This document shows positions 39,001 through 62,696 of a stretch of 64,000 nucleotides of DNA, piece after piece. The stretch spans positions 5,270,001-5,334,000 of the forward strand of contig OZ218950.1 in assembly GCA_965112735.1 (NCBI GenBank), written 5' to 3'. The notes under the pieces were generated by a model that was not told the origin of the DNA, did not search any database, and was given only the letters and a program-made list of their open reading frames with translations. A program made the position numbers and the translations under genes. Source of the stretch: Phaeosaccion multiseriatum (Eukaryota > Protista > Ochrophyta, other classes). Each line of letters opens with the position of its first letter. Position 1 is the first letter of the stretch.

Positions 39001-42000
39001 CTCCGGCACGGCCAACTCCGGCAACAGCGGCGCCGTGCTCATCGGCAGCGGCGCCAGCACGGGAGGACGTGGCGGCATGCTGAGCCTGACGGCGGGCAGC
39101 GGCACCAGCGGCGCTGGCGGTCTGGTGCAGATGTATGCTGGTGTGAGTTCGGCTCTGACGGGCGGTGTGGTGAGCATCGGGGGCGGCGAGGGCCGCGCGT
39201 CCACGAGCGGGTCTGTGACTGTGCGCTCTCTGAACGCTGGCACGGCTGGCACGAGTGGTCGTCTGGTGTTCAGCTCCGGCACGGCCAACTCCGGCAACAG
39301 CGGCGCCGTGCTCATCGGCAGCGGCGCCAGCACGGGAGGACGTGGCGGCATGCTGAGCCTGACGGCGGGCAGCGGCACCAGCGGCGCTGGCGGTCTGGTG
39401 CAGATGTATGCTGGTGTGAGCACGGTACTGACGGGCGGTGTGGTGAGCATCGGGGGCGGCGAGGGCCGCGCGTCCACGAGCGGGTCTGTGACTGTGCGCT
39501 CTCTGAACGCTGGCACGAAGGGTACGAGTGGTCGTCTGGTGTTCAGCTCCGGCACGGCCAACTCCGGCAACAGCGGCGCCGTGCTCATCGGCAGCGGCGC
39601 CAGCACGGGAGGACGTGGCGGCATGCTGAGCCTGACGGCGGGCAGCGGCACCAGCGGCGCTGGCGGTCTGGTGCAGATGTATGCTGGTGTGAGCACGGCC
39701 CTGACGGGCGGTGTGGTGAGCATCGGGGGCGGTGAGGGCCGCGCGTCCACGAGCGGGTCTGTGACTGTGCGCTCTCTGAACGCTGGCACGGCTGGTACGA
39801 GTGGTCGTCTGGTGTTCAGCTCCGGCACGGCCAACTCCGGCAACAGCGGCGCCGTGCTCATCGGCAGCGGCGCCAGCACGGGAGGTCGTGGCGGCCTCCT
39901 GAGCCTGACGGCGGGCAGCGGCACCAGCGGCGCTGGTGGACTCGTGCAGATGTATGCTGGCGTGAGCACGGCCCTGACAGGCGGTGTGGTGAGCATCGGG
40001 GGCGGCGAGGGCCGCGCGTCCACGAGCGGGTCTGTGACTGTGCGCTCTCTGAACGCTGGCACGGCTGGTACGAGTGGTCGCCTGGTGTTCAGCTCCGGCA
40101 CGGCCAACTCCGGCAACAGCGGCGCCGTGCTCATCGGCAGCGGCGCCAGCACGGGAGGACGTGGCGGCATGGTGAGCCTGACGGCGGGCAGCGGCACCAG
40201 CGGCGCTGGCGGTCTGGTACAGATGTATGCTGGTGTGAGTACGGCCCTGACGGGCGGTGTGGTGAGCATCGGGGGCGGCGAGGGCCGCGCGTCCACGAGC
40301 GGGTCTGTGACTGTGCGCTCTCTGAACGCTGGCACGGCCGGCACGAGTGGTCGTCTGGTGTTTAGCTCCGGCACGGCCAACTCCGGCAACAGCGGCGCCG
40401 TGCTCATCGGCAGCGGCGCCAGTACGGGAGGACGTGGCGGCATGCTGAGCCTGACGGCGGGCAGCGGCACCAGCGGCGCTGGCGCTCTGGTGCAGATGTA
40501 TGCTGGTGTGAGTACGGCCCTGACGGGCGGTGTGGTGAGCATCGGGGGCGGCGAGGGCCGCGCGTCCACGAGCGGGTCTGTGACTGTGCGCTCTCTGAAC
40601 GCTGGCACGAAGGGCACGAGTGGTCGTCTGGTGTTCAGCTCCGGCACGGCCAACTCCGGCAACAGCGGCGCCGTGCTCATCGGTAGTGGCGCCAGCACGG
40701 GAGGACGTGGCGGCATGCTGAGCCTGACGGCGGGCAGCGGCACCAGCGGCACTGGTGGTCTGGTGCAGATGTATGCTGGCGTGAGCACGGTACTGACGGG
40801 CGGTGTGGTGAGCATCGGGGGCGGCGAGGGCCGCGCGTCCACGAGCGGGTCTGTGACTGTGCGCTCTCTGAACGCTGGTGCGGCCGGCACGAGTGGTCGT
40901 CTGGTGTTCAGCTCCGGCACGGCCAACTCCGGCAACAGCGGCGCCGTGCTCATCGGAAGTGGCGCCAGCACAGGAGGACGTGGAGGCATGCTGAGCCTGA
41001 CGGCGGGCAGCGGCACCAGTGGCGCTGGTGGTCTGGTGCAGATGTATGCTGGTGTGAGTACGGCTCTGACGGGCGGTGTGGTGAGCATCGGGGGCGGCGA
41101 GGGCCGCGCGTCCACGAGCGGGTCTGTGACTGTGCGCTCTCTGAACGCTGGCACGGCTGGCGGGAGTGGTCGTCTGGTGTTCAGCTCCGGCACGGCCAAC
41201 TCCGGCAACAGCGGCGCCGTGCTCATCGGCAGCGGCGCCAGCACGGGAGGACGTGGCGGCATGCTGAGCCTGACGGCGGGCAGCGGCACCAGCGGCGCTG
41301 GCGGTCTGGTGCAGATGTATGCTGGTGTGAGTACGGCTCTGACGGGCGGTGTGGTGAGCATCGGGGGCGGCGAGGGCCGCGCGTCCACGAGCGGGTCTGT
41401 GACTGTGCGCTCTCTGAACGCCGGCTCGGCCGGCTCGAGTGGTCGTCTGGTGTTCAGCTCCGGCACGGCCAACTCCGGCAACAGCGGCGCCGTGCTCATC
41501 GGCAGCGGCGCCAGCACGGGAGGACGTGGCGGCATGCTGAGCCTGACGGCGGGCAGCGGCACCAGCGGCGCTGGTGGACTGGTGCAGATGTATGCGGGCG
41601 TGAGCACGGCCCTGACGGGCGGTGTGGTGAGCATCGGGGGCGGCGAGGGCCGCGCGTCCACGAGCGGGTCTGTGATAGTGCGCTCTCTGAACGCTGGCAC
41701 GGCCGGCTCGAGTGGTCGTCTGGTGTTCAGCTCCGGCACGGCCAACTCCGGCAACAGCGGCGCCGTGCTCATCGGCAGCGGCGCCAGCACGGGAGGACGT
41801 GGCGGCATGCTGAGCCTGACGGCGGGCAGCGGCACCAGCGGCGCTGGTGGACTGGTGCAGATGTATGCGGGCGTGAGCACGGCCCTGACGGGCGGTGTGG
41901 TGAGCATCGGGGGCGGTGAGGGCCGCGCGTCCACGAGCGGGTCTGTGACTGTGCGCTCTCTGAACGCTGGCACGAAGGGTACGAGTGGTCGTCTGGTGTT

Positions 42001-45000
42001 CAGCTCCGGCACGGCCAACTCCGGCAACAGCGGCGCCGTGCTCATCGGCAGCGGCGCCAGCACGGGAGGACGTGGGGGCATGGTGAGCCTGACGGCGGGC
42101 AGCGGCACCAGCGGCGCTGGTGGTCTGGTGCAGATGTATGCGGGTGTGAGTACGGCTCTGACGGGCGGTGTGGTGAGCATCGGGGGCGGCGAGGGCCGCG
42201 CGTCCACGAGCGGGTCTGTGACTGTGCGCTCTCTGAACGCTGGCACGGCCGGCTCGAGTGGTCGTCTGGTGTTCAGCTCCGGCACGGCCAACTCCGGCAA
42301 CAGCGGCGCCGTGCTCATCGGCAGCGGTGCCAGCACGGGAGGTCGTGGCGGCATGGTGAGCCTGACGGCGGGCAGCGGCACCAGCGGCACTGGCGGTCTG
42401 GTGCAGATGTATGCTGGTGTGAGCACGGCCCTGACGGGAGGAGTGGTGAGCATCGGGGGCGGCGAGGGCCGCGCGTCCACGAGCGGGTCTGTGACTGTGC
42501 GCTCTCTGAACGCTGGCACGGCCGGCACGAGTGGTCGTCTGGTGTTCAGCTCCGGCACGGCCAACTCCGGCAACAGCGGCGCCGTGCTCATCGGCAGCGG
42601 CGCCAGCACGGGAGGACGTGGCGGCATGCTGAGCCTGACGGCGGGCAGCGGCACCAGCGGCGCTGGCGGTCTGGTGCAGATGTATGCTGGTGTGAGCACG
42701 GTACTGACGGGCGGGGTGGTGAGCATCGGGGGCGGCGAGGGCCGCGCGTCCACGAGCGGGTCTGTGACTGTGCGCTCTCTGAACGCTGGCACGAAGGGTA
42801 CGAGTGGTCGTCTGGTGTTCAGCTCCGGCACGGCCAACTCCGGCAACAGCGGCGCCGTGCTCATCGGCAGCGGCGCCAGCACGGGAGGACGTGGCGGCAT
42901 GCTAAGCCTGACGGCGGGCAGCGGCACCAGCGGCGCTGGCGGTCTGGTGCAGATGTATGCTGGTGTGAGTACGGCCCTGACGGGCGGTGTGGTGAGCATC
43001 GGGGGCGGCGAGGGCCGCGCGTCCACGAGCGGGTCTGTGACTGTGCGCTCTCTGAACGCTGGCACGAAGGGTACGAGTGGTCGTCTGGTGTTCAGCTCCG
43101 GCACGGCCAACTCCGGCAACAGCGGCGCCGTGCTCATCGGCAGCGGCGCCAGCACGGGAGGTCGTGGCGGCATGGTGAGCCTGACGGCGGGCAGCGGCAC
43201 CAGCGGTGCCGGCGGTCTGGTGCAGATGTATGCTGGTGTGAGCACGGCCCTGACAGGCGGTGTGGTGAGCATCGGGGGCGGCGAGGGCCGCGCGTCCACG
43301 AGTGGGTCTGTGACTGTGCGCTCTCTGAACGCCGGCTCGGCCGGCTCGAGTGGTCGTCTGGTGTTCAGCTCCGGCACGGCCAACTCCGGCAACAGCGGCG
43401 CCGTGCTCATCGGCAGCGGCGCCAGCACGGGAGGGCGTGGCGGTATGCTGAGCCTGACGGCGGGCAGCGGCACCAGCGGCGCTGGTGGTCTGGTGCAGAT
43501 GTATGCTGGTGTGAGCACGGTACTGACGGGCGGTGTGGTGAGCATCGGGGGCGGTGAGGGCCGCGCGTCCACGAGCGGGTCTGTGACTGTGCGCTCTCTG
43601 AACGCTGGCACGGCCGGCACGAGTGGTCGTCTGGTATTCAGCTCCGGCACGGCCAACTCCGGCAACAGCGGCGCCGTGCTCATCGGCAGCGGCGCCAGCA
43701 CGGGAGGTCGTGGCGGCATGCTGAGCCTGACGGCGGGCAGCGGCACCAGCGGCGCTGGTGGACTCGTGCAGATGTATGCTGGTGTGAGTACGGCCCTGAC
43801 GGGCGGTGTGGTGAGCATCGGGGGCGGTGAGGGCCGCGCGTCAACGAGCGGGTCTGTGACTGTGCGCTCTCTGAACGCTGGCACGAAGGGTACGAGTGGT
43901 CGTCTGGTGTTCAGCTCCGGCACGGCCAACTCCGGCAACAGCGGCGCCGTGCTCATCGGAAGTGGCGCCAGCACGGGAGGACGTGGCGGCATGCTGAGCC
44001 TGACGGCGGGCAGCGGCACCAGCGGCGCTGGCGGTCTGGTGCAGATGTATGCTGGTGTGAGCACGGCCCTGACGGGAGGAGTGGTGAGCATCGGAGGCGG
44101 TGAGGGCCGCGCGTCCACGAGCGGGTCTGTGACTGTGCGCTCTCTGAACGCTGGCACGGCCGGCACGAGTGGTCGTCTGGTGTTCAGCTCCGGCACGGCC
44201 AACTCCGGCAACAGCGGCGCCGTGCTCATCGGCAGCGGCGCCAGCACGGGAGGACGTGGCGGCATGGTGAGCCTGACGGCGGGCAGCGGCACCAGCGGCG
44301 CTGGTGGTCTGGTTCAGATGTATGCTGGTGTGAGTACAGCCCTGACGGGCGGTGTGGTGAGCATCGGGGGCGGCGAGGGCCGCGCATCCACGAGCGGGTC
44401 TGTGACTGTGCGCTCTCTGAATGCTGGTACGGCTGGCACGAGTGGTCGTCTGGTGTTCAGCTCCGGCACTGCCAACTCCGGCAACAGCGGCGCCGTGCTC
44501 ATCGGCAGCGGCGCCAGCACGGGAGGACGTGGCGGAATGGTGAGCCTGACGGCGGGCAGCGGCACCAGCGGCGCTGGCGGTCTGGTACAGATGTATGCTG
44601 GTGTGAGCACGGCCCTGACGGGCGGTGTGGTGAGCATCGGGGGCGGCGAGGGCCGCGCGTCCACGAGCGGGTCTGTGACAGTGCGCTCTCTGAACGCTGG
44701 CACGGCTGGCACGAGTGGTCGTCTGGTATTCAGCTCCGGCACGGCCAACTCCGGCAACAGCGGCGCCGTGCTCATCGGCAGCGGCGCCAGCACGGGAGGG
44801 CGTGGTGGCATGCTGAGCCTGACGGCGGGCAGCGGCACCAGCGGCGCTGGCGGTCTGGTGCAGATGTATGCTGGTGTGAGTACGGCCCTGACGGGCGGTG
44901 TGGTGAGCATCGGGGGCGGCGAGGGCCGCGCGTCCACGAGCGGGTCTGTGACTGTGCGCTCTCTGAACGCTGGCACGGCTGGCACGAGTGGTCGTCTGGT

Positions 45001-48000
45001 GTTCAGCTCCGGCACGGCCAACTCCGGCAACAGCGGCGCCGTGCTCATCGGCAGCGGCGCCAGCACGGGAGGACGTGGCGGCATGGTGAGCCTGACGGCG
45101 GGCAGCGGCACCAGCGGCACTGGCGGTCTGGTGCAGATGTATGCTGGTGTGAGCACGGTACTGACGGGCGGTGTGGTGAGCATCGGGGGTGGTGAGGGCC
45201 GCGCGTCCACGAGCGGGTCTGTGACTGTGCGCTCTCTGAACGCTGGCACGAAGGGCACGAGTGGTCGTCTGGTGTTCAGCTCTGGCACGGCCAACTCCGG
45301 CAACAGCGGCGCCGTGCTCATCGGCAGCGGCGCCAGCACGGGAGGACGTGGCGGCATGCTGAGCCTGACGGCGGGCAGCGGCACCAGCGGCGCTGGCGGT
45401 CTGGTGCAGATGTATGCTGGTGTGAGTACGGCCCTGACGGGCGGTGTGGTGAGCATCGGGGGCGGCGAGGGCCGTGCATCCACGAGCGGGTCTGTGACTG
45501 TGCGCTCTCTGAACGCTGGCACGGCTGGCACGAGTGGTCGTCTGGTGTTCAGCTCCGGCACGGCCAACTCCGGCAACAGCGGCGCCGTGCTCATCGGCAG
45601 CGGCGCCAGCACGGGAGGACGTGGCGGCATGGTGAGCCTGACGGCGGGCAGCGGCACCAGCGGCGCTGGCGGTCTGGTGCAGATGTATGCTGGTGTGAGT
45701 ACAGCCCTGACGGGCGGTGTGGTGAGCATCGGCGGCGGCGAGGGCCGCGCATCCACGAGCGGGTCTGTGACTGTGCGCTCTCTGAACGCTGGTGCAGCTG
45801 GCACGAGTGGTCGTCTGGTGTTCAGCTCCGGCACGGCCAACTCCGGCAACAGCGGCGCCGTGCTCATCGGCAGCGGCGCCAGCACGGGAGGACGTGGCGG
45901 CATGCTGAGCCTGACGGCGGGCAGCGGCACCAGCGGCGCTGGCGGTCTGGTGCAGATGTATGCCGGCGTGAGCACGGCCCTGACGGGAGGTGTGGTGAGC
46001 ATCGGGGGTGGTGAGGGCCGCGCGTCCACGAGCGGGTCTGTGACTGTGCGCTCTCTGAACGCTGGCACGAAGGGTACGAGTGGTCGTCTGGTGTTCAGCT
46101 CCGGCACTGCCAACTCCGGCAACAGCGGCGCCGTGCTCATCGGCAGCGGCGCCAGCACGGGAGGACGTGGCGGCATGGTGAGTCTAACCGTTGGCAGCGG
46201 CACCAGTGGTGCTGGCGGGATCCTGCAGATGTATGCTGGCGTGAGTACGGTGATGACGGGAGGCGCGATGACCCTCGTAGGTGGCGAGGGCCGCGCGTCC
46301 ACGAGCGGGTCTGTGACTGTGCGCTCTCTGAACGCTGGTGCGGCTGGTACGAGTGGTCGTCTGGTGTTCAGCTCCGGCACGGCCAACTCCGGCAACAGCG
46401 GCGCCGTGCTCATCGGCAGCGGCGCCAGCACGGGAGGACGTGGTGGCATGCTGAGCCTGACGGCGGGCAGCGGCACCAGCGGCGCTGGTGGTCTGGTGCA
46501 GATATACGCTGGTGTGAGCACGGCTCTGACGGGCGGTGTGGTGAGCATCGGGGGCGGCGAGGGCCGCGCGTCCACGAGCGGGTCTGTGACTGTGCGCTCT
46601 CTGAACGCTGGCTCGGCTGGCTCGAGTGGTCGTCTGGTGTTCAGCTCCGGCACGGCCAACTCCGGCAACAGCGGCGCCGTGCTCATCGGCAGCGGCGCCA
46701 GCACGGGAGGTCGTGGCGGCATGCTGAGCCTGACGGCGGGCAGCGGCACCAGCGGCGCTGGCGGTCTGGTGCAGATGTATGCTGGTGTGAGTACGGCCCT
46801 GACGGGCGGTCTGGTGAGCATCGGGGGCGGCGAGGGCCGTGCATCCACGAGCGGGTCTGTGACTGTGCGCTCTCTGAACGCTGGCACGGCTGGCGCGAGT
46901 GGTCGTCTGGTGTTCAGCTCCGGCACGGCCAACTCCGGCAACAGCGGCGCCGTGCTCATCGGCAGCGGCGCCAGCACGGGAGGACGTGGAGGTATGCTGA
47001 GCCTGACGGCGGGCAGCGGCACCAGCGGCGCTGGCGGTCTGGTGCAGATGTATGCTGGTGTGAGTACGGCCCTGACGGGCGGTGTGGTGAGCATCGGGGG
47101 TGGTGAGGGCCGCGCGTCCACGAGCGGGTCTGTGACTGTGCGCTCTCTGAACGCTGGCACGGCCGGCACGAGTGGTCGTCTGGTGTTCAGCTCCGGCACG
47201 GCCAACTCCGGCAACAGCGGCGCCGTGCTCATCGGCAGCGGCGCCAGCACGGGAGGACGTGGCGGCATGCTGAGCCTGACGGCAGGCAGCGGCACCAGCG
47301 GCGCTGGTGGTCTGGTGCAGATGTATGCTGGTGTGAGTACGGCCCTGACGGGCGGTGTGGTGAGCATCGGGGGCGGCGAGGGCCGCGCGTCCACGAGCGG
47401 GTCTGTGACTGTGCGCTCTCTGAACGCTGGCACGGCTGGCACGAGTGGTCGTCTGGTGTTCAGCTCCGGCACGGCCAACTCTGGCAACAGCGGCGCCGTG
47501 CTCATCGGAAGTGGCGCCAGCACGGGAGGACGTGGCGGCATGCTGAGCCTGACGGCGGGCAGCGGCACCAGCGGCGCTGGCGGTCTGGTGCAGATGTATG
47601 CTGGTGTGAGTACGGCTCTGACGGGCGGTGTGGTGAGCATCGGGGGCGGTGAGGGCCGCGCGTCCACGAGCGGGTCTGTGACTGTGCGCTCTCTGAACGC
47701 TGGCACGGCTGGTACGAGTGGTCGTCTGGTGTTCAGCTCCGGCACGGCCAACTCCGGCAACAGCGGCGCCGTGCTCATCGGCAGCGGCGCCAGCACGGGA
47801 GGTCGTGGCGGCATGCTGAGCCTGACGGCGGGCAGCGGCACCAGCGGCGCTGGCGGTCTGGTGCAGATGTATGCTGGTGTGAGCACGGCCCTGACGGGCG
47901 GTGTGGTGAGCATCGGGGGCGGCGAGGGCCGCGCGTCCACGAGCGGGTCTGTGACTGTGCGCTCTCTGAACGCTGGCACGAAGGGTACGAGTGGTCGTCT

Positions 48001-51000
48001 GGTGTTCAGCTCCGGCACGGCCAACTCCGGCAACAGCGGCGCCGTGCTCATCGGCAGCGGCGCCAGCACGGGAGGACGTGGCGGCATGCTGAGCCTGACG
48101 GCGGGCAGCGGCACCAGCGGAGCTGGCGGTCTGGTGCAGATGTATGCTGGTGTAAGTACGGCCCTGACGGGCGGTGTGGTGAGCATCGGGGGCGGCGAGG
48201 GCCGCGCGTCCACGAGCGGGTCTGTGACTGTGCGCTCTCTGAACGCTGGCACGGCTGGCTCGAGTGGTCGTCTGGTGTTCAGCTCCGGCACGGCCAACTC
48301 CGGCAACAGCGGCGCCGTGCTCATCGGCAGCGGCGCCAGCACGGGAGGACGTGGAGGTATGCTGAGCCTGACGGCGGGCAGCGGCACCAGCGGCGCTGGC
48401 GGTCTGGTACAGATGTATGCTGGTGTGAGCACGGCTCTGACGGGCGGTGTGGTGAGCATCGGGGGCGGCGAGGGCCGCGCGTCCACGAGCGGGTCTGTGA
48501 CTGTGCGCTCTCTGAACGCTGGCACGGCCGGCTCGAGTGGTCGTCTGGTGTTCAGCTCCGGCACGGCCAACTCCGGCAACAGCGGCGCCGTGCTCATCGG
48601 CAGCGGCGCCAGCACGGGAGGACGTGGCGGCATGGTGAGCCTGACGGCGGGCAGCGGCACCAGCGGCGCTGGCGGTCTGGTGCAGATGTATGCTGGTGTG
48701 AGCACGGCTCTGACGGGCGGTGTGGTGAGCATCGGGGGCGGCGAGGGCCGCGCGTCCACGAGCGGGTCTGTGACTGTGCGCTCTCTGAACGCTGGCACGG
48801 CTGGTACGAGTGGTCGTCTGGTGTTCAGCTCCGGCACTGCCAACTCCGGCAACAGCGGCGCCGTGCTCATCGGCAGCGGCGCCAGCACGGGAGGACGTGG
48901 CGGCATGCTGAGCCTGACGGCGGGCAGCGGCACCAGCGGCGCTGGCGGTCTGGTGCAGATGTACGCTGGTGTGAGCACGGCCCTGACGGGCGGTGTGGTG
49001 AGCATCGGGGGTGGTGAGGGCCGCGCGTCCACGAGCGGGTCTGTGACTGTGCGCTCTCTGAACGCTGGCACGGCCGGCACGAGTGGTCGTCTGGTGTTCA
49101 GCTCCGGCACGGCCAACTCCGGCAACAGCGGCGCCGTGCTCATCGGCAGCGGCGCCAGCACGGGAGGTCGTGGCGGCATGCTGAGCCTGACGGCGGGCAG
49201 CGGCACCAGCGGCGCTGGCGGTCTGGTACAGATGTATGCTGGTGTGAGTACGGCCCTGACGGGCGGTGTGGTGAGCATCGGGGGCGGCGAGGGCCGCGCG
49301 TCCACGAGCGGGTCTGTGACTGTGCGCTCTCTGAACGCTGGCACGGCCGGCACGAGTGGTCGTCTGGTGTTCAGCTCCGGCACGGCCAACTCCGGCAACA
49401 GCGGCGCCGTGCTCATCGGCAGCGGCGCCAGCACGGGAGGCCGTGGAGGCATGCTGAGCCTGACGGCGGGCAGCGGCACCAGCGGCGCTGGCGGTCTGGT
49501 GCAGATGTATGCTGGTGTGAGCACGGTACTGACGGGCGGTGTGGTGAGCATCGGGGGTGGTGAGGGCCGCGCGTCCACGAGCGGGTCTGTGACTGTGCGC
49601 TCTCTGAACGCTGGCACGAAGGGTACGAGTGGTCGTCTGGTGTTCAGCTCCGGCACGGCCAACTCCGGCAACAGCGGCGCCGTGCTCATCGGCAGCGGCG
49701 CCAGCACGGGAGGACGTGGGGGCATGGTGAGCCTGACGGCGGGCAGCGGCACCAGCGGCGCTGGTGGTCTGGTGCAGATGTATGCGGGTGTGAGTACGGC
49801 TCTGACGGGCGGTGTGGTGAGCATCGGGGGCGGCGAGGGCCGCGCGTCCACGAGCGGGTCTGTGACTGTGCGCTCTCTGAACGCTGGCACGGCCGGCTCG
49901 AGTGGTCGTCTGGTGTTCAGCTCCGGCACGGCCAACTCCGGCAACAGCGGCGCCGTGCTCATCGGCAGCGGTGCCAGCACGGGAGGACGTGGCGGCATGG
50001 TGAGTCTAACCGTTGGCAGCGGCACCAGTGGTGCTGGCGGGATCCTGCAGATGTATGCTGGCGTGAGTACGGTGATGACGGGAGGCGCGATGACCCTCGT
50101 AGGTGGCGAGGGCCGCGCGTCCACGAGCGGGTCTGTGACTGTGCGCTCTCTGAACGCTGGCACGGCTGGCACGAGTGGTCGTCTGGTGTTCAGCTCCGGC
50201 ACGGCCAACTCCGGCAACAGCGGCGCCGTGCTCATCGGCAGCGGCGCCAGCACGGGAGGACGTGGTGGCATGCTGAGCCTGACGGCGGGCAGCGGCACCA
50301 GCGGCGCTGGTGGTCTGGTGCAGATATACGCTGGTGTGAGCACGGCTCTGACGGGCGGTGTGGTGAGCATCGGGGGCGGCGAGGGCCGCGCGTCCACGAG
50401 CGGGTCTGTGACTGTGCGCTCTCTGAACGCTGGCACGGCTGGCTCGAGTGGTCGTCTGGTGTTCAGCTCCGGCACGGCCAACTCCGGCAACAGCGGCGCC
50501 GTGCTCATCGGCAGCGGCGCCAGCACGGGAGGTCGTGGCGGCATGCTGAGCCTGACGGCGGGCAGCGGCACCAGCGGCGCTGGCGGTCTGGTGCAGATGT
50601 ATGCTGGTGTGAGTACGGCCCTGACGGGCGGTGTGGTGAGCATCGGCGGCGGCGAGGGCCGCGCGTCCACGAGCGGGTCTGTGACTGTGCGCTCTCTGAA
50701 CGCTGGCTCGGCTGGCACGAGTGGTCGTCTGGTGTTCAGCTCCGGCACGGCCAACTCCGGCAACAGCGGCGCCGTGCTCATCGGCAGCGGCGCCAGCACG
50801 GGAGGACGTGGAGGTATGCTGAGCCTGACGGCGGGCAGCGGCACCAGCGGCGCTGGCGGTCTGGTGCAGATGTATGCTGGTGTGAGCACGGTACTGACGG
50901 GAGGCGTGGTGAGCATCGGGGGCGGCGAGGGACGCGCGTCCACGAGTGGGTCTGTGACTGTGCGCTCTCTGAACGCTGGCACGGCGGGCACGAGTGGTCG

Positions 51001-54000
51001 TCTGGTGTTCAGCTCCGGCACGGCCAACTCCGGCAACAGCGGCGCCGTGCTCATCGGCAGCGGCGCCAGCACGGGAGGTCGTGGCGGCATGCTGAGCCTG
51101 ACGGCGGGCAGCGGCACCAGCGGCGCTGGCGGTCTGGTACAGATGTATGCTGGTGTGAGTACGGCCCTGACGGGCGGTGTGGTGAGCATCGGGGGCGGCG
51201 AGGGCCGCGCGTCCACGAGCGGGTCTGTGACTGTGCGCTCTCTGAACGCTGGCACGAAGGGCACGAGTGGTCGTCTGGTGTTCAGCTCCGGCACGGCCAA
51301 CTCCGGCAACAGCGGCGCCGTGCTCATCGGAAGTGGCGCCAGCACGGGAGGACGTGGTGGCATGGTGAGCCTGACGGCGGGCAGCGGCACCAGCGGCGCT
51401 GGCGGTCTGGTGCAGATGTATGCTGGTGTGAGCACGGCTCTGACGGGCGGTGTGGTGAGCATCGGGGGCGGTGAGGGCCGCGCGTCCACGAGCGGGTCTG
51501 TGACTGTGCGCTCTCTGAACGCTGGCACGGCTGGCTCGAGTGGTCGTCTGGTGTTCAGCTCCGGCACGGCCAACTCCGGCAACAGCGGCGCTGTGCTCAT
51601 CGGCAGCGGCGCCAGCACGGGAGGTCGTGGAGGCATGCTGAGCCTGACGGCGGGCAGCGGCACCAGCGGCGCTGGCGGTCTGGCGCAGATGTATGCTGGT
51701 GTGAGTACGGCCCTGACGGGCGGTGTGGTGAGCATCGGGGGCGGTGAGGGCCGCGCGTCCACGAGCGGGTCTGTGACTGTGCGCTCTCTGAACGCTGGCA
51801 CGGCCGGCACGAGTGGTCGTCTGGTGTTCAGCTCCGGCACAGCCAACTCTGGCAACAGCGGCGCCGTGCTCATCGGCAGCGGCGCCAGCACGGGAGGACG
51901 TGGCGGCATGCTGAGCCTGACGGCGGGCAGCGGCACCAGCGGCGCTGGCGGTCTGGTGCAGATGTATGCTGGTGTGAGTACGGTACTGACGGGCGGTGTG
52001 GTGAGCATCGGCGGCGGCGAGGGACGCGCGTCCACGAGCGGGTCTGTGACTGTGCGCTCTCTGAACGCTGGCACGGCTGGCACGAGTGGTCGTCTGGTGT
52101 TCAGCTCCGGCACGGCCAACTCCGGCAACAGCGGCGCCGTGCTCATCGGCAGCGGCGCCAGCACGGGAGGTCGTGGCGGCATGCTGAGCCTGACGGCGGG
52201 CAGCGGCACCAGCGGCGCTGGCGGTCTGGTGCAGATGTATGCTGGCGTGAGTACGGCTCTGACCGGCGGGGTGGTGAGCATCGGGGGCGGCGAGGGCCGC
52301 GCGTCCACGAGCGGGTCTGTGACTGTGCGCTCTCTGAACGCTGGCACGGCCGGCACGAGTGGTCGTCTGGTGTTCAGCTCCGGCACGGCCAACTCCGGCA
52401 ACAGCGGCGCCGTGCTCATCGGCAGCGGCGCCAGCACGGGAGGACGTGGCGGCATGCTGAGCCTGACGGCAGGCAGCGGCACCAGCGGCGCTGGCGGTCT
52501 GGTGCAGATGTACGCTGGTGTGAGCACGGCTCTGACGGGCGGTGTGGTGAGCATCGGGGGCGGTGAGGGCCGCGCGTCCACGAGCGGGTCTGTGACTGTG
52601 CGCTCTCTGAACGCTGGCACGAAGGGTACGAGTGGTCGTCTGGTGTTCAGCTCCGGCACGGCCAACTCCGGCAACAGCGGTGCCGTGCTCATCGGCAGCG
52701 GCGCCAGCACGGGAGGTCGTGGCGGCATGCTGAGCCTGACGGCGGGCAGCGGCACCAGCGGCGCTGGCGGTCTGGTACAGATGTATGCTGGTGTGAGCAC
52801 GGTACTGACGGGCGGTGTGGTGAGCATCGGGGGTGGTGAGGGTCGCGCGTCCACGAGCGGGTCTGTGACTGTGCGCTCTCTGAACGCTGGTACGGCTGGC
52901 TCGAGTGGTCGTCTGGTGTTCAGCTCCGGCACGGCCAACTCCGGCAACAGCGGCGCCGTGCTCATCGGCAGCGGCGCCAGCACGGGAGGACGTGGCGGCA
53001 TGCTGAGCCTGACGGCGGGCAGCGGCACCAGCGGCGCCGGTGGTCTGGTGCAGATGTATGCTGGTGTGAGCACGGTACTGACAGGCGGTGTGGTGAGCAT
53101 CGGGGGCGGCGAGGGCCGCGCGTCCACGAGCGGGTCTGTGACTGTGCGCTCTCTGAACGCTGGAGCGGCTGGCTCGAGTGGTCGTCTGGTGTTCAGCTCC
53201 GGCACGGCCAACTCCGGCAACAGCGGCGCCGTGCTCATCGGCAGCGGCGCCAGCACGGGAGGACGTGGCGGCATGCTGAGCCTGACGGCGGGCAGCGGCA
53301 CCAGCGGCGCTGGCGGTCTGGTGCAGATGTATGCTGGTGTGAGCACGGCCCTGACAGGCGGTGTGGTGAGCATCGGGGGCGGTGAGGGCCGCGCGTCCAC
53401 GAGCGGGTCTGTGACTGTGCGCTCTCTGAACGCTGGCTCGGCTGGTACGAGTGGTCGTCTGGTGTTCAGCTCCGGCACGGCCAACTCCGGCAACAGCGGC
53501 GCCGTGCTCATCGGCAGCGGCGCCAGCACGGGAGGTCGTGGAGGCATGCTGAGCCTGACGGCGGGCAGCGGCACCAGCGGCGCTGGCGGTCTGGTGCAGA
53601 TGTATGCTGGTGTGAGCACGGCCCTGACGGGCGGTGTGGTGAGCATCGGGGGCGGCGAGGGCCGCGCGTCCACGAGCGGGTCTGTGACTGTGCGCTCTCT
53701 GAACGCTGGCACGGCTGGCACGAGTGGTCGTCTGGTGTTCAGCTCCGGCACGGCCAACTCCGGCAACAGCGGCGCCGTGCTCATCGGCAGCGGCGCCAGC
53801 ACGGGAGGACGTGGCGGTATGCTGAGCCTGACGGCGGGCAGCGGCACCAGCGGCGCTGGCGGTCTGGTGCAGATGTATGCTGGTGTGAGCACGGCCCTGA
53901 CGGGCGGTGTGGTGAGCATCGGGGGTGGTGAGGGCCGCGCGTCCACGAGCGGGTCTGTGACTGTGCGCTCTCTGAACGCTGGCACGAAGGGTACGAGTGG

Positions 54001-55620
54001 TCGTCTGGTGTTCAGCTCCGGCACGGCCAACTCCGGCAACAGCGGCGCCGTGCTCATCGGCAGCGGCGCCAGCACGGGAGGACGTGGCGGCATGCTGAGC
54101 CTGACGGCGGGCAGCGGCACCAGCGGCGCTGGCGGTCTGGTACAGATGTATGCTGGTGTGAGCACGGTACTGACGGGCGGTGTGTTGAGCATCGGGGGTG
54201 GTGAGGGCCGCGCATCCACGAGCGGGTCTGTGACTGTGCGCTCTCTGAACGCTGGCACGGCTGGTACGAGTGGTCGTCTGGTGTTCAGCTCCGGCACGGC
54301 CAACTCCGGCAACAGCGGCGCCGTGCTCATCGGCAGCGGCGCCAGCACGGGAGGACGTGGCGGCATGCTGAGCCTGACGGCGGGCAGCGGCACCAGCGGC
54401 GCTGGTGGTCTGGTGCAGATATATGCCGGTCTGAGCACGGCTCTGACGGGCGGTGTGGTGAGCATCGGGGGTGGTGAGGGCCGCGCGTCCACGAGCGGGT
54501 CTGTGACTGTGCGCTCTCTGAACGCTGGCACGGCCGGCTCGAGTGGTCGTCTGGTGTTCAGCTCCGGCACGGCCAACTCCGGCAACAGCGGCGCCGTGCT
54601 CATCGGCAGCGGCGCCAGTACGGGAGGACGTGGCGGCATGCTGAGCCTGACGGCGGGCAGCGGCACCAGCGGCGCTGGCGGTCTCGTGCAGATGTATGCT
54701 GGTGTGAGTACGGCCCTGACGGGAGGTGTGTTGAGCATCGGGGGCGGCGAGGGCCGCGCGTCCACGAGCGGGTCTGTGACTGTGCGCTCTCTGAACGCTG
54801 GCTCGGCTGGTACGAGTGGTCGTCTGGTGTTCAGCTCCGGCACGGCCAACTCTGGCAACAGCGGCGCCGTGCTCATCGGCAGCGGCGCCAGCACGGGAGG
54901 ACGTGGCGGCATGCTGAGCCTGACGGCGGGCAGCGGCACCAGCGGCGCTGGTGGTCTGGTGCAGATGTATGCTGGTGTGAGCACGGCCCTGACGGGCGGT
55001 GTGGTGAGCATCGGGGGCGGCGAGGGCCGTGCGTCCACGAGCGGGTCTGTGACTGTGCGCTCTCTGAACGCTGGCACGGCTGGCACGAGTGGTCGTCTGG
55101 TGTTTAGCTCCGGCACGGCCAACTCCGGCAACAGCGGCGCCGTGCTCATCGGCAGCGGCGCCAGCACGGGAGGACGTGGCGGCATGCTGAGCCTGACGGC
55201 GGGCAGCGGCACCAGCGGCGCTGGTGGTCTGGTACAGATGTATGCTGGTGTGAGCACGGCTCTGACGGGCGGTGTGGTGAGCATCGGGGGCGGCGAGGGA
55301 CGCGCGTCCACGAGCGGGTCTGTGACTGTGCGCTCTCTGAACGCTGGCACGAAGGGTACGAGTGGTCGTCTGGTGTTCAGCTCCGGCACGGCCAACTCTG
55401 GTAACAGCGGCGCCGTGCTCATCGGTAGCGGCGCCAGCACGGGAGGACGTGGCGGCATGCTGAGCCTGACGGCGGGCAGCGGCACCAGCGGCGCTGGCGG
55501 TCTGGTGCAGATGTATGCCGGTGTGAGTACGGCCTTGACAGGCGGTGTGGTGAGCATCGGGGGAGGTGAGGGCCGCACATCCACGAGCGGGTCTGTGACT
55601 GTGCGCTCTCTGAACGCTGG
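1..55620 (+). repeat. Coding tandem array, 273-bp unit (91 aa), 204 unit starts in the window, consensus about 71% GC
   Basis: The ATG of 'MYAG' recurs at 48, 321, ..., 26256 (48+96x273), 37766, ..., 55511 (37766+65x273). Unit: MYAGVSTVLTGGVVSIGGGEGRASTSGSVTVRSLNAGTAGTSGRLVFSSGTANSGNSGAVLIGSGASTGGRGGMVSLTAGSGTSGAGGLVQ. GC was hand-counted on the consensus unit (193/273). Confidence 0.99.
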
Positions 55621-56455
55621 TACAGCGGGTGCGAGTGGTCGACTGGTGTTTAGCTCTGGTGTGGCCACCTCCGGCAACAGCGGATCTGTACTGATTGGCA
55701 CGGGAGCTGCCACCGGTGGTCGCGGAGGTGCCATTTCGATGGCTGTGGCAGCCGGTGACAGTGGAATGGGTGGAAGTATTACTATTGAGGCGGGCAGCAC
55801 CAGTGCGACCACCATGAATGGTGGGAATGTGGTGGTGAAGCCGGGCAACAACGGCGGTACCACTCTGCCTGGAAGCATTGAACTGCAGGACGGCCTTGGG
55901 AATGTGGCAGTGACAGTTTCGGCAACTACGGTCATTGACAGCGCATCTACGACAGATCTGTCTTCTACGACGGCCATGACCATTGATTCGGGTGATACCT
56001 TGTCAATCGCGTCGGCCGCAGCGACTACGCTTGTTTCGACTACTTCGGTAGCTATCACAGCAAGCGGAGGTGCGATCACCCTGAACCCGTCCACCCATGT
56101 GACTTTCAACGGCAAGGAAGTTCGAGGCTGGATGATGGGTTCTGGGACGCATTCAAGCGGCGCACTTCTCACCACTGGTACAACCGCAGCTACCATCGAT
56201 GCAATTGTTGGGCAGTTCACAAGAACAGCGTCGGGAGACTTGTCAGGTGGTGGCACAGAGGTGGTTCGAATCGCGAACTCATTGGTCACCACGTCAGACT
56301 ACGTCATCGGCACCATCACCTCTTCCTGCGATAACAAAGTGATGGGCCTGGTAAGCACCACGATTAGTGCGGGAACAATCGACTTCGGCGTCTACTTGGA
56401 TTGTTCGACCTCGAGCACTTATACTTTGAGTTTCGTTGTCTACAAGATTCTATGA
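3..56455 (+). CDS. Giant Gly/Ser/Thr-rich tandem-repeat protein (>=18,800 aa, 5'-truncated by the window); predicted beta-helical/solenoid fibre with a unique C-terminal domain; apparently split by assembly indels at 26304-37503
   Basis: The frame is open from nt 3 (LTAGSGTSGAGALVQMY...). ORFs 42..(26303), 26341..(30340) and 37496..56455 all encode the same 91-aa unit. The repeat frame has no stop codons, and inter-copy differences are mostly synonymous. The last segment reads through a degenerate unit into a unique C-terminus ending ...YTLSFVVYKIL-TGA-TGA, followed by an AT-rich 3' region. Confidence 0.85.
26304..37503 (+). other. Low-quality consensus zone within the array: dozens of small indels (net +44 nt), probably sequencing or polishing artefacts
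   Basis: Extra G/C bases in homopolymers (e.g. 26304-26309, 30340-30342, 31061-31063, 31113-31115, 31594-31596, 37501-37503), dinucleotide slips (~32008, ~36224) and merged-allele strings (acggctactg at 32016 and 35315; atgcgtgagc at 37437). The 273-nt phase is exact outside this zone. Confidence 0.8.
55621..56455 (+). other. Non-repetitive C-terminal region of the giant protein: degenerate repeats, 8-aa-periodic beta segment, ~88-aa terminal beta-rich domain with two Cys
   Basis: From the translation of the end of ORF 37496..56455: GGAISMAVAAG / GGSITIEAG / GGNVVVKPG, then TVIDSAST-TDLSSTTA-MTIDSGDT-LSIASAAA-TTLVSTTS-VAITASGG-AITLNPST, then ATIDAIVGQFTRT...LSFVVYKIL*. Confidence 0.85.
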
Positions 56456-56986
56456 TGACAACACGGAGATGATTGCCGGTTGGCGATCAATAATATATAA
56501 ATACAAATGAAGTGATTTACAACAACAACAAAATAGCATTTTCCTCTTCGTCCCATAGTCCCGCAGTAGTCGTAACAGATCGCGGGCCTTTCTTTGGCGC
56601 CGGTCGCTGCCCCGCCCCAACTTCTGGCTCCCGTGCCTTAGGTTGATTCCCATAAGTCCATAATTTGTGTGCCCACGGAGGACGGAGACGCTCCTTTCCC
56701 AGCACACATGTGTCTGGTCAACCCTTTTTCGTGTATATACCATTCGTCCGTTTGTTTACCATTTAGTCTATTAAAGATAGCCTGATGTCATATAACAGCA
56801 TAGAGAATAGACTCTTTCTTCGAGATTGATGCTGTCCCTGTCTGTCTGACCTGGCCGGCCGAGGGTGTGCTACCAATTTTCGCACGGCACAAAGGACAAC
56901 AAAGCCAGTTTCTGCCAGCATCACATATTCTTACATTAACGGTAGAATGAGTGGTTTCATGGCATTCGTTTCGTTCGGGCACGTCG

Positions 56987-59030
56987 CTACGATGCCTTGG
57001 CTGCTGCAACCTGCAAAGCTTCCTCCAGTATTCGAAGGCAATCGTTCACTTCTGCCTCAGACACCACGAGAGGGGGTACAAATCGAATGACCTTAAGCCC
57101 CGCGGGCACGAGAAGTAGACCCTTCTCAGATGCCGTTCCCACAACCTCCCCGGCGAGGACGGGTGCAGTCTCCTTCAAGACCAGGCCCAAAATGAGGCCC
57201 CATCCCCGGACGCCTTCGCAGAGGGAGGGGAACTTAGCCACGAGCGCTTCCAGGCCTGGTGAGGAGAAGAGAGCCACACACATGAGCTTCAAATCCAAAG
57301 GGGAGAGAAAGAAAGGCGTAATCGAATCTATCAATACCTGCCCGTAGCTGCTCTCCTCGCGCTTGACAATTGTCCAGGAGCCCTCCATTGTCCAGTTGGT
57401 CCGCCACCGCCAGCCCGGCCGCACACGCGAGGGGGTTTCCGCCGTAGGTAGAGGCGTGGTCCCCGGGCCCGAACACGTTTGCCCTGGCCTTGCACAGCAT
57501 CGCCCCGATAGGCACCCCGCCTCCCAAAGCTTTGGCAGAGGTGAACACATCAGGCTGCACGCCCAGATTTTCGTAACCCCATAGCCGGCCAGTGCGACCC
57601 ATTCCCGTCTGCAGCAGACAAGTCGTGGAAGCGTGCCTTGTGTAAGCAAACGAACGAACGCGCAGAGCACGTCTCACACACGCGCACGCACCTGGACTTC
57701 GTCACAGATCATGAGAGCGCCGGTCTCGTCACAAATTTGCCGAATGGCCTGGAAGAACTCCTTACTCGCGGGCTTTACTCCGCCCTCTCCCTGTAGAGCC
57801 TCCATCATGATTGCAGCCACCCCGCGCCGCTTCTGGCCTGGTAGCGCGCCTCTCAACCTGCCCAGTCCATTGATGCGACCCACCTTTCGAAGTTTCGTGC
57901 AAGCAAGTTGTGGGTCGTCAGACCTCTCTATAGGAGTAAACCAACAGTTTGGCGAAAGATGGCGCTCGAGGTTCTCACCAGTTTCTTGAGCCCTTTAACG
58001 TCGTTGAGGGCCACATACTCAAAGCCCGGTACGAGGGGCCCGAAGTTCTTTTGGTACTTGGGCTGGCCTGTTGCTGATATGGTGGCCATGGTGCGACCAT
58101 GGAAGGACTGCGGATACAATATACAGAGTTTACGCGCCGGCTTGAGTCTTGGGAACACACCAGCTGGGAACCCAGGAGCGAGTACGTTACCTCGTGTGCA
58201 GTAATAATGATGGGATAGTCGATGCCCAGTTCGGTGTGCGCGTGCTTCCGAGAGAGCTTGATTGCCGCCTCATTCGCCTCCGCCCCGGAGTTGCAGAAGA
58301 AGGCCTGTCAACATAGTGGCGGCGAGCAATCGATGCAGTAACCCGTTGGTCGAGCTGCACATTTGAGCTGGCCCCGTTGCCCACGGCGTGCAGGTCTTCC
58401 TGTCTTTACCTTGTCTGCGCAGCTGTTCTCGACCAGCCACTTTGCCAGTTCTCCTTGTTGCGGAATGTAGTATAAGTTGGATATGTGGTGCAGCTTTGAC
58501 ACTTGCTCAGACACGGCCTTGGCGAACACCTTGTTGCCGTGCCCCAGAGCGCACGTCGATATGCCTGCCACAAAGTCCAAGTACTCCTTGCCGTTGATGT
58601 CTGTGAGCTGAGGGACGGAAGGCATTGCTCAGACAAGGTGACCTCCCAGGTCCAATACAACGGGCACCTACTCACCTTGCATCCGTCGCCACGGACGATT
58701 GTGAGGGGGTATCGCCCATACGTTTTTTGCACCACACTGTCGAAGACCGCTGGTGTCATACCTTCCTCTCCGGCTGATGCCGTGGCAGCGTGGGACGTCC
58801 GCGACAGCAAGGCAGCACTACTCCTTGTGTTGCAAGTCTCCTCGAACCGGCCCTGTATTCGTACAGCATAGAATCAAGCGGTTCGTTCAAACACCTTCCC
58901 TCCTCATGTCGCTCCCCACCAATTTTAAACACACCTGCCGGCGCGAGATAGCCAAGCTTCCCTGGCTGAATGCCACTCCACCGGCACAGCAGCTCCCGGC
59001 CACCACAGCCAGCAACGCCTTGTTCCGCAT
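56987..59030 (-). CDS. argD: Acetylornithine aminotransferase (class-III PLP aminotransferase), plastid-targeted; 8 exons, ~481 aa
   Basis: Exons on the minus strand: 59030-58935, 58852-58676, 58607-58410, 58304-58191, 58107-57979, 57883-57692, 57608-57338, 57255-56987. All introns are GT-AG (68-105 nt) and the exons join in frame (1446 nt). Motifs: [59 protein letters not shown] lysine in [32 protein letters not shown]. Confidence 0.95.
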
Positions 59031-59125
59031 GTTTGCACACTGTTTTCTGTTCACCACAATCCCCGATCCTCGGATCGATCGGGCGGGAGTCGGCCGTAGA
59101 GTGCCATCGCCTCCCCCTAAAAGTA
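59031..59125. promoter_or_regulatory. Very short divergent intergenic region (putative bidirectional promoter)
   Basis: The argD ATG at 59030 (-) and the next gene's candidate ATGs at 59126 or 59159 (+) are only ~95-130 nt apart, head to head. No specific promoter motif was identified. Confidence 0.45.
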
Positions 59126-59215
59126 ATGCGGAAGTTTCGTGCCGCATTGTATAGACAAATGATTCGCAGGAGGCGAAGCAGCTGCGATAGCAGCAGCACC
59201 AGCAGCAGTAGTAGC

Positions 59216-59247
<32 letters not shown>

Positions 59248-60721
59248 AAGTAGCAGTAGTAGTAGCAGTAGGAGTGGCGGTGGCCGTGGCTCTTACAGCG
59301 GCAGCCACTGTGATCACTTGGTTGACAACTTGGTTGTGGATCTGGAGAGTCTGCCAGAGCAGCAGCCACGGCATTCTCTCTCGTCTCTCGGAATCTCTGA
59401 GAATGACTTACCTGCAGGGAAGCACGAGGAGAGTATGTGTCCGAAAGGAGCAACAGCAGCCGCAGCGACAGAACATTTATGTGAGAGCCCTGGATCAGCA
59501 CCTTATGCGGCAGCCAGTCCTGCTGTTGCCGCAGCTGCTACGCTGCCCACGATGAGTCCAAAGGCTTTTGGCCTTTCTCGATGGAAAGAATATGCCATTC
59601 TCCGGCATGGAGACAAGATGCAGTTTTTGTCGAGTCGTCATGGGCAAGAGATGCTGAAAGAAACAGCGGACAGTATTCGAACAAAGGAAGTAAACAACCT
59701 CAAGGTGAGCTGGCTGCTCGCTGTTTATTATTTTATCGTAGCACCTTCTCAAGTCATGCTCAAATCGCCCACAGGCAAGACTTCAATGGGCGGAGAAACT
59801 CAACGTGGAGTTGGCGCGAGGGCTAGCGGCGAATACAAATGAAAAGAAAGATCTCGCCGTGAGAGTGCGGCAGCTGGAGCAGGAGGTTGATAGGCTGGAG
59901 GCGGACCAGCGGAGTCTACTTAAGAACGCCTCGATTCAGCAAGGAAAGGGGTCCAATCTTGAGCGGAGGCTTGCAGAAACGGACACGCTGAAGTCCTATC
60001 TCTTTGGCTCTTCTTCATCCCGCCGAGAGATGGATATGCATAGCGGCGCCAGCGAGAAACGAACGAGGTAAGGCCCCGTCTTCCAGCCCCAAAGCGTGTT
60101 CAGTACGCATGCTCTTAAGCGTGTCCAATGTTACCTTTCTCTGCACGTGTATAGCGCTTCCCACCACCGGACAGGCTCGAGACACGCAACCCGAGCCGCC
60201 AATGCCCCATCCTTGGATCAGGACCACCCCGAGGTATGACCCCACACTGGAGCAGAAAGAATAAAAGAGAACTCATTGATCACACTACTGCTTCCTCTCA
60301 CACGCTTGTGGCGGCTCAGATGCGAAGAGTGGTGGACCTTCTGAAGCTGGAGATGAGCGAGCTTCGTCGGAGACACGCCGCCGAACTCGCGCAAATGTCT
60401 GGCCGCATGGCCAAGCAGAGACTTGTGCTACACAGAGTAGAGGTGCAGTAAGGGTGTAAACACAGCTATGGAGCTGGAGGGAGGAGCGCGTGGTCACTAC
60501 TTTCGCCGCCTAACACCTCCTCCTCACCCTTGCTATCATACTCTTGGCAGGGAGAGAGAGATGGGCTCCTGGCTGCGGTGGAGTCACAGGCCAAGTACTG
60601 GAGTAGTATAGGACCACCACCTGCTTTGGACACGTGTCAAGAACCCACGTCTCTAGGGGTCGCCCCTCAAGGAGACGCTTCTTCCTTTTTAACACCAAGC
60701 GCTTCCCAGGACGCTGGCTGA
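59126..60721 (+). CDS. Hypothetical coiled-coil protein with an N-terminal poly-Ser tract; 5 predicted exons
   Basis: Predicted exons 59126 (or 59159)-59704, 59775-60067, 60155-60233, 60320-60442 and 60551-60721, with GT-AG introns that keep the frame. Heptad-like segments: KKDLAVRVRQLEQEVDRLEADQRSLLK and VVDLLKLEMSELRRRHAAELAQM...RVE|GERDGLLAAVESQ. No family recognised; the start codon is uncertain. Confidence 0.6.
59189..59270 (+). repeat. (AGT/AGC)n microsatellite encoding poly-Ser
   Basis: The run agcagcagc...agtagtagtagtagtagtagt is visible at 59189-59270 and is in frame with the downstream gene. Confidence 0.9.

Positions 60722-62661: not shown

Positions 62662-62696
<35 letters not shown>

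Follow-up and report, generated by a model that had tools for sequence, protein, structure and literature searches.

What kind of domain closes a giant repeat gene of an alga, and did it come from a phage? We studied this question in the window, i.e., the whole 64,000-nucleotide stretch of DNA analysed here, where the plus strand encodes a very long repeat stalk, a neck, a linker and a terminal domain, the knob (Table 1). The knob and its stop codon (56189-56455, plus strand) constitute the C-terminal end of an ORF of 6,319 aa (37496..56455). Its 88-residue translation was exactly that quoted in an initial annotation, which had taken the domain for a phage fibre or decoration tip inside a eukaryotic gene. 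The two Cys of the knob are the only ones in this ORF, as had been said of the visible protein; those read in another ORF (42..27953) are out-of-frame, because all of them lie past a frameshift at ~26.3 kb. Giant minus-strand ORFs (e.g., 44314..56292) were discounted as stop-free shadows of the GC-rich repeat.

Table 1 Features at and around the knob, in window coordinates
Feature	Position	Strand	Evidence or remark
Stalk: tandem array, ~204 copies of a 273-nt (91-aa) unit	1..55683	+	TRF period 273
Zone of ~20 small frame-breaking insertions	26341..37577	+	Anchor-motif spacing, frame tracking
Last degenerate stalk repeats, from array to neck	55652..55897	+	Translation; GC falls to 61%
Neck: nine turns of an 8-residue repeat, hydrophobic at a fixed position	55898..56122	+	Periodicity
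Linker with conserved Gly-Trp, from neck to knob	56123..56188	+	Alignments A1 and A3; low pLDDT
Knob: 88-aa domain, predicted six-stranded beta-sandwich	56189..56452	+	Translation, AlphaFold2 strands, structural neighbours, homologues
First conserved Cys codon, just past strand 3	56327..56329	+	Invariant C81 of alignment A3
Second conserved Cys codon, just past strand 5	56402..56404	+	Invariant C106 of A3; putative disulfide partner
Tandem stops TGA TGA	56453..56458	+	Sequence; stop of the knob ORF at 56453-56455, second TGA directly 3'
AT-richer spacer and 3' UTRs of two convergent genes	56459..56986		Sequence; one X10 contig spans it unbroken
Convergent class-III aminotransferase, acetylornithine-aminotransferase-like, at least 6 short GT-AG introns	56987..59140	-	RNA, translation, Pfam

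The huge expansion of the stalk that had been remarked on was evident: TRF counted 203.8 copies with 96% matches. The array extends past the left edge of the window, and the N-terminus of the giant protein, with any signal peptide, lies outside it. Each unit is rich in Gly, Ser, Thr, Ala and Val and consists of six sub-repeats of ~15 aa, with a hydrophobic periodicity that peaks at 15.25 residues (91/6). The 181 clean units were 95-100% identical to their consensus and showed 726 synonymous versus 327 non-synonymous codon differences among them, so the array behaves as coding sequence. GC content was 70% across the array versus ~55% from 56 kb on, and the final unit was only 57% identical to the consensus. 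Unit spacing was exactly 273 nt except between 26.3 and 37.6 kb, where it was 274-280 nt and the ORF list was fragmented; we read this zone as long-read error left unpolished in mid-array, the alternative being real decay. On either side of it, 9,303 and 6,319 codons were free of stops. By DNA read depth, a rough measure (summed contig depths of repeat and unique sequence, divided one by the other, from three DNA runs on the same sample), the array would total ~300 units, i.e., ~100 further units upstream of the window. In the three runs, coverage of the repeat bins exceeded that of unique sequence by a factor of, very roughly, a few hundred. Their sample is perhaps the one from which the window was assembled.

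The neck comprises 75 residues and ends in the motif ITLNPxTHxTFN, which was conserved in P0002, L001, L003 and L004 (see below). Its hydrophobic periodicity peaked at 8.0 residues, a value matched by 2 of 2000 shuffles; the periodicity was weaker in the neck of L003 (8.25-8.75). This arrangement resembles the triple beta-helix of the T4 gp5 C-terminus and of VgrG, which likewise is built of octapeptides with a fixed hydrophobic position and stands directly before a terminal domain. It differs from that system in that the neck has only nine turns and in that a Pfam scan found neither a Gp5_C nor any other Pfam match in it.

The gene had been called eukaryotic, and its surroundings agree with this. 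A convergent gene for a class-III aminotransferase ends 530 nt from the stop codon of the knob, and its last exon matched the Pfam family Aminotran_3 with E 2.9e-10. RNA contigs of run X10 placed its splice joints at 57254/57337, 57608/57692, 58107/58191, 58303/58409, 58607/58676 and 58851/58934. Its introns, at least six of them between 57.2 and 58.9 kb, read CT..AC on the plus strand and therefore GT..AG on the minus strand. The locus is thus an ordinary intron-rich eukaryotic one, and this spliced neighbour contradicts the encoding of the knob by a phage or prophage. No viral hallmark gene was found in the 7.5 kb downstream. The GC content at third codon positions was also close in the two genes, 0.61 for the knob versus 0.66 for the aminotransferase.

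Transcription across the knob was seen in the same run. A single RNA contig with a mean depth of 1101 began at 55591, crossed the knob and the spacer without a break and extended into the last three exons of the aminotransferase; depths were ~4-18 for the other exons of that gene and 121-144 for the last stalk repeats, with a steep step at ~55.6 kb. RNA contigs covered the last stalk repeats and the knob, and no intron appeared over the neck, the knob and the 3' UTR. These depths suggest an abundant transcript over the neck, the knob and the 3' UTR; sense transcription is likely rather than proven, because the RNA contigs are strandless and depth is a contig mean. The contig over the knob is merged with the convergent gene.

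Relatives of the knob were very few. A phmmer search with the 199-aa neck and knob as query against all 1.84 billion cluster representatives returned three protein matches. One of these, P0003, a 1,554-aa repeat protein with E 6e-5, was rejected as a low-complexity match to the Ser/Thr-rich neck. P0001 lies at locus L001 on a 26.7-kb contig of the NCBI assembly GCA_024449685.1, beside genes that carry the Pfam families PUB, HVSL and CAF1, which we take to be of eukaryotic type. P0002 and its cluster mate P0004 come from an ENA metagenome contig. A scan of JGI metagenomes added L003 and L004, intact relatives of L001. Protein search and contig scans together thus located the knob in no more than three sequence sets besides the window: the genome assembly of a eukaryote and two metagenomes. 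All the relatives shared one architecture: a Gly/Ser-rich stalk of ~15-residue coils, the neck, a Gly-Trp linker and the knob at the extreme end. Knob identity between the window and the relatives was 34-42%, with 14 invariant positions that include both Cys, so that the knob is more than a chance product; the view of it as a discrete C-terminal domain was upheld. In L001 the linker contains an in-frame TGA where L003 and L004 have Arg.

The comparison of L003 with L004 gave 22 synonymous and 3 non-synonymous differences in the neck and linker, 24 and 12 in the knob, and 17 and 17 in the stalk. The neck is therefore the most constrained part. Judged by these counts, the knob is constrained yet more variable than the neck, as tips often are.

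Sequence searches for known families gave no support to the motif match to phage fibre or decoration proteins that had been proposed in the initial annotation. Pfam and PHROGs had no match for the 88-, 122-, 267- and 650-aa pieces of the protein end; the homologues had none in Pfam, and three of them none in PHROGs either. At E up to 10, neither the four pieces nor any of the five remaining members of alignment A3 matched the H_lectin profile (PF09458), and the same pieces and members had no Pfam match to the K1-lyase_C profile (PF24146). A sequence search of the PDB, with the single sequence and with profile A3, yielded only chance matches (E 0.77 and 1.9). With the knob as query and E up to 10, tblastn had no hit in 50,697 phage records, an IMG/VR scan with alignment A2 found no relative, and neither did word-indexed protein searches with the neck and knob of the window and of L003. 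The hhalign probability of profile A3 was 0.4% against the C-terminus of LKA1 gp49 and 0.2% against a 21-sequence K1-lyase_C alignment, weak negatives because the profiles were shallow on both sides (Neff ~2 and ~1.2); profile building for K1-lyase_C and LKA1 recovered only near-identical phages. On sequence grounds, the knob is a family new to Pfam and PHROGs and very sparsely sampled.

The knob was modelled with AlphaFold2 twice, in run 1 as part of the 199-aa neck and knob (single sequence) and in run 2 as a 122-aa piece with a six-sequence alignment. Both monomer models, of middling confidence (knob pLDDT ~63-79), gave six strands in the last ~85 residues, in line with the all-beta pattern noted earlier, and left the neck and linker without a usable model (pLDDT 30-40). 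The strands of the 122-aa model spanned residues 39-47, 56-63, 72-79, 86-94, 97-104 and 111-119. The first modelled strand begins at ~56201, so the domain boundary at 56189 is correct. The two Cys lie just past strands 3 and 5, which are expected to be co-directional in an up-and-down sandwich, and a disulfide between them is therefore plausible; we infer that the pair forms one. Two other kinds of chain end were weighed and set aside. A C-terminal anchor signal, of the GPI type or otherwise hydrophobic, does not fit, as the chain ends in a knob beta-strand, and a Peptidase_S74 chaperone (PF13884), found at fibre C-termini, had no Pfam match in the last 650 aa or in the C-termini of the homologues.

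Each model was compared with 48,161 chains, and the same five neighbours came out on top for both. They included the H-lectin domain of discoidin I (scores of 7.7 and 6.7 with the two models), the phage proteins AP22 gp54 (7.4 and 6.4) and phi297 gp61 (7.2 and 6.3), and Helix pomatia agglutinin (7.2 and 6.1). Lower ranks held R-pyocin fibre tips, the tailspike of cyanophage Pam1, the coral lectin SLL-2, Tk-SP and K1 lyase. Foldseek gave no match at E below 1e-3. Its probability was 1.0 (E 5e-3 to 7e-2) for a large number of C-terminal domains from uncultured Caudovirales, for entries named "H-type lectin" and "tail fiber" and for some giant-virus proteins, 0.89-0.96 for SLL-2, Helix pomatia agglutinin and Helix aspersa agglutinin, and 0.54-0.93 for K1-lyase_C entries. 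Among BFVD fold matches, Faunusvirus and Marseillevirus proteins had probability 1.0, and collagen-like proteins of cedratviruses and pithoviruses had lower or mixed probability. Among the AFDB clusters matched were entries for H-type lectins and for a phage tail protein, the C-terminal part of a protein with an S74 domain, and a fragment from a eukaryotic transcriptome (A0A7S2XWY3, presumably from a marine protist, judging by the style of its accession). A fold search of the Swiss-Prot part of AFDB returned only low-probability matches to CBMs and adaptin ears. In a language-model feature search that does not depend on the structural models, clusters of Uroviricota stood next to the neck and knob (0.93, 187 of 256 features shared), and the neighbours with names included clusters of K1-lyase_C and of H_lectin.

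These comparisons are suggestive of the discoidin-like or H-type-lectin class for the predicted shape of the knob. Domains of this class form the tips of phage tailspikes and tail fibres as well as the trimeric GalNAc/Gal lectins of snails, corals and Dictyostelium, and all its known members are, to our knowledge, trimeric. The knob is accordingly a new sequence family with a predicted fold of a known tip or lectin kind, in a position of a known kind. The description of LKA1 gp49 groups discoidins, the tailspikes of AP22 and Sf6, HPA and Tk-SP in one jellyroll-sandwich class, which probably evolved for the binding of oligo- or polysaccharides and for trimer stabilisation (PMC5701251).

The proposal of a phage-type tip thus held in part. 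The predicted fold comes closest to the discoidin-like domains at phage tailspike C-termini; at the sequence level no link was found, and eukaryotic lectins match equally well. Profile searches gave no hit to a viral or prokaryotic fibre protein, and structural hits were obtained only narrowly.

Comparison with the known systems brings out both sides of this resemblance. The closest fold neighbours on the phage side are the C-terminal domains of tailspikes (LKA1 gp49, 4ru4, residues ~679-768; phi297 gp61, 4ru5; AP22 gp54, 4y9v), and the position is tailspike-like too, as the knob ends at the stop codon after a solenoid-type stalk and a neck. However, the knob shows no sequence or profile similarity to tailspike C-termini or K1-lyase_C, its gene is eukaryotic and nuclear, and its conserved Cys pair is a difference from the tailspike domains. 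Upstream, tailspikes carry an enzymatic beta-helix of the pectate-lyase type, whereas the knob gene encodes an enormous non-enzymatic Gly/Ser repeat stalk. The predicted shape of the knob also resembles that of the H-type lectins (PF09458; HPA, 2ccv; the C-terminal domain of discoidin I, 2w94; SLL-2, 3wmp), whose profile gave no match. H-type lectins are antiparallel beta-sandwiches with six strands and ~100 residues, and they form homotrimers whose GalNAc/Gal sites lie between protomers. They are small, or are domains within proteins of modest size, and none is known as the tip of a micron-scale fibre. Polinton-like viruses (PLVs) of protists are reported to have fibres of phage type that bear H_lectin domains at the C-terminus, and S74 chaperones (PMC12220804). 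Like the giant algal protein, PLV and giant-virus fibres occur in a eukaryotic setting, and in the viruses they are built from phage tail-fibre repeats (PMC12220804); they are ~1,000 aa long and lie inside viral elements, whereas the algal gene abuts a spliced host gene and has ~300 near-identical units.

In phage fibres and spikes, a solenoid and a neck lead to a terminal domain that lies on the three-fold axis, clamps the fibre end and often binds sugars. Because the stalk, neck and knob follow this same order, we propose, with a confidence that is evenly balanced, that the knob caps the distal end of a giant extracellular fibre, where it would trimerise and bind glycans. A Gly/Ser-rich beta-solenoid of great length, with at least 204 units of six ~15-residue coils each, would form the stalk and extend for ~0.6 µm within the window (204 units × 6 coils × 4.8 Å). 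The neck would belong to the 8-residue-periodic type that forms triple beta-helices, and the knob would be a six-stranded sandwich locked by one conserved disulfide. Three knobs would pack around the fibre axis, clamp the stalk at its end, form a cap there and present carbohydrate-binding sites at the distal tip; the fibre, presumably secreted, would then serve as an adhesin or surface filament.

The source of the knob is a separate matter. A phage or viral origin is plausible, and in one reading, which we hold to be rather improbable, the alga captured a gene for a tail fibre or tailspike, either from a phage or from a eukaryotic virus with fibres of phage type, and expanded its repeats. Candidate donors would be a phage, a polinton-like virus, a virophage or a giant virus, with the knob as receptor-binding tip. 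Most fold neighbours are indeed phage tailspike or fibre C-termini and giant-virus fibre proteins, and the Uroviricota clusters of the feature search point the same way, as do the triple beta-helix period of the neck and the H_lectin- and S74-bearing fibres reported for protist PLVs (PMC12220804). The clusters nearest to the stalk have no Pfam family, and the top one among them has a predicted structure similar to that of Peptidase_S74-bearing fibre proteins (TM 0.78-0.91), kinship being unproven, and the 800 nt of non-repeat C-terminal sequence are intronless versus an intron every ~250-300 nt in the neighbouring gene. However, neither the 1.84 billion proteins nor IMG/VR nor the 50,697 phage genomes contained a viral or prokaryotic homologue, the architecture was of eukaryote type in 4 of 4 homologous sequence sets, and both sets with flanking genes (the window and L001) sit among eukaryote-type genes. 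The host-like GC3 of the knob and the lack of a viral hallmark gene downstream also argue against capture. Since eukaryotic H-type lectins fit the model equally well, phage homology and the direction of any transfer are unproven; of the suggestion that the gene is a domesticated viral or bacterial fibre, hugely expanded, only the expansion is borne out. A more specific version, slightly less probable again, has a domesticated phage- or PLV-type fibre fused to a eukaryotic signal/PSI exon and inflated to ~300 units in an intronless gene of ~90 kb. This version includes a protein of ~30,000 aa that forms a micron-long, trimeric, adhesive fibre with the knob as its receptor-binding tip.

Neck and knob might instead be a lineage-specific end cap that closes a monomeric, three-sided beta-solenoid, prevents its aggregation and binds no ligand; the matches to lectins and phage tips would then reflect a common small sandwich and no relation. 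In favour of this reading, no lectin family could be connected with the knob by sequence, constraint is stronger on the neck than on the knob, which would be the expectation where structure, and not ligand specificity, is what counts, and the stalk-like clusters were predicted as monomeric solenoids (pTM 0.69). Co-translational folding from N to C terminus would also be easier for so long a protein. By our estimate, translation of such a chain at a few residues per second takes more than 1 h, so a C-terminal folding nucleus would be awkward and a monomeric solenoid stalk is favoured; because of this long wait, a monomeric solenoid with a simple end cap stays a serious rival. Nevertheless, the same five related tip or lectin domains topped both searches of the 48,161 chains, the orthogonal feature search pointed to the same kind of domain, and a disulfide-type Cys pair plus 14 invariant residues exceed what a simple cap usually has, and we regard the end cap as unlikely. 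Far less probable still is a decaying or mis-assembled locus, i.e., a pseudogene or a satellite-like assembly artefact with the knob as a relic. The frame-breaking insertions in mid-array and the in-frame TGA of L001 would fit it, but the long stop-free stretches outside the insertion zone, the synonymous excess in repeats, neck and knob, the conservation of the knob across distant sequence sets, the RNA contigs over the last repeats and knob, and a DNA read depth in agreement with a real array of ~300 units all speak against it. The indels themselves are all small insertions clustered in mid-array, a pattern typical of unpolished long reads.

If the fold and the function as a trimeric lectin hold, a micron-scale algal fibre would end in a tip module otherwise known from phage tailspikes and from small lectins of animals and amoebae, and a small expressible domain would give a testable handle on what the giant protein binds and where it is located. 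Should the reading of a virally captured giant fibre be true, the protein would rank with the largest on record and would exemplify the rare reuse of a virion fibre as a cell-surface structure. The knob is of interest mainly as the unique and tractable handle on an extraordinary giant fibre gene, and as a marker for the expression of that gene and for its origin by viral capture or from an old eukaryotic lectin. Neck and knob form a practical probe, antibody target and marker, because no other sequence at the 3' end of the array is unique.

When 55856-56452 was compared with the convergent class-III aminotransferase gene at 56987-59140, the giant gene was intronless over at least its last 860 nt and apparently throughout its 56 kb inside the window, whereas the adjacent aminotransferase gene had about one intron per 250-300 nt. 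RNA contigs from run X10, which carry no strand, showed a steep step in depth within 55318-57875: the last stalk repeats were covered at a depth of 121-144, a single contig running through the neck, knob and spacer into the final three exons of the aminotransferase gene reached 1101, and the remaining aminotransferase exons were covered at only 4-18. This step could be due to pronounced 3' bias on a very large, GC-rich mRNA, to a short transcript comprising the neck and knob, or to the overlap of the two convergent 3' ends.

Within the stalk array, about 20 repeat units in succession measured 274-280 nt instead of 273, each of them shifting the frame; beyond this zone the unit spacing was exact across ~180 units. 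The shifts look like unpolished long-read error in the unreachable mid-section of the array, although they could be real decay. Very long minus-strand and off-frame ORFs were also present on both strands over 1-55683, the region of the stalk array (two examples are listed in the table); these were rejected as genes, being stop-free shadows of the GC-rich repeat.

Coordinates of the array zone, ORFs and flanking features in the window
Feature	Position	Strand	Extent
Zone of frame-shifting repeat units	26341-37577	+	~20 units
Stop-free shadow ORF	16377-30326		4,649 aa
Stop-free shadow ORF	44314-56292		3,992 aa
(GTA/GCA)n trinucleotide microsatellite	59183-59293
Open frame	61902-64000	+	at least 699 codons, continuing past the window end

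The homologue L001, on a contig of assembly GCA_024449685.1, presented an in-frame TGA within the linker (L001:2353-2355), and its metagenome relatives L003 and L004 both had an Arg codon at exactly the same position. The TGA may be allelic, belong to a pseudogene copy or result from a sequencing error. For the CAF1-type neighbour of this homologue (L001:9696-10433), the nearest ESM Atlas clusters were mostly from Streptophyta, which hints, as a lead only, that the family may extend into the green lineage.

In the downstream flank, the microsatellite lay close to the aminotransferase gene's 5' end, corresponded to a Tyr/Cys-rich run on the coding strand, and was a break point in the assemblies of all DNA runs. 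The open frame that follows had no Pfam match; it contained long poly-Gln/CAG tracts and then a charged region rich in Lys, Glu and Ala.
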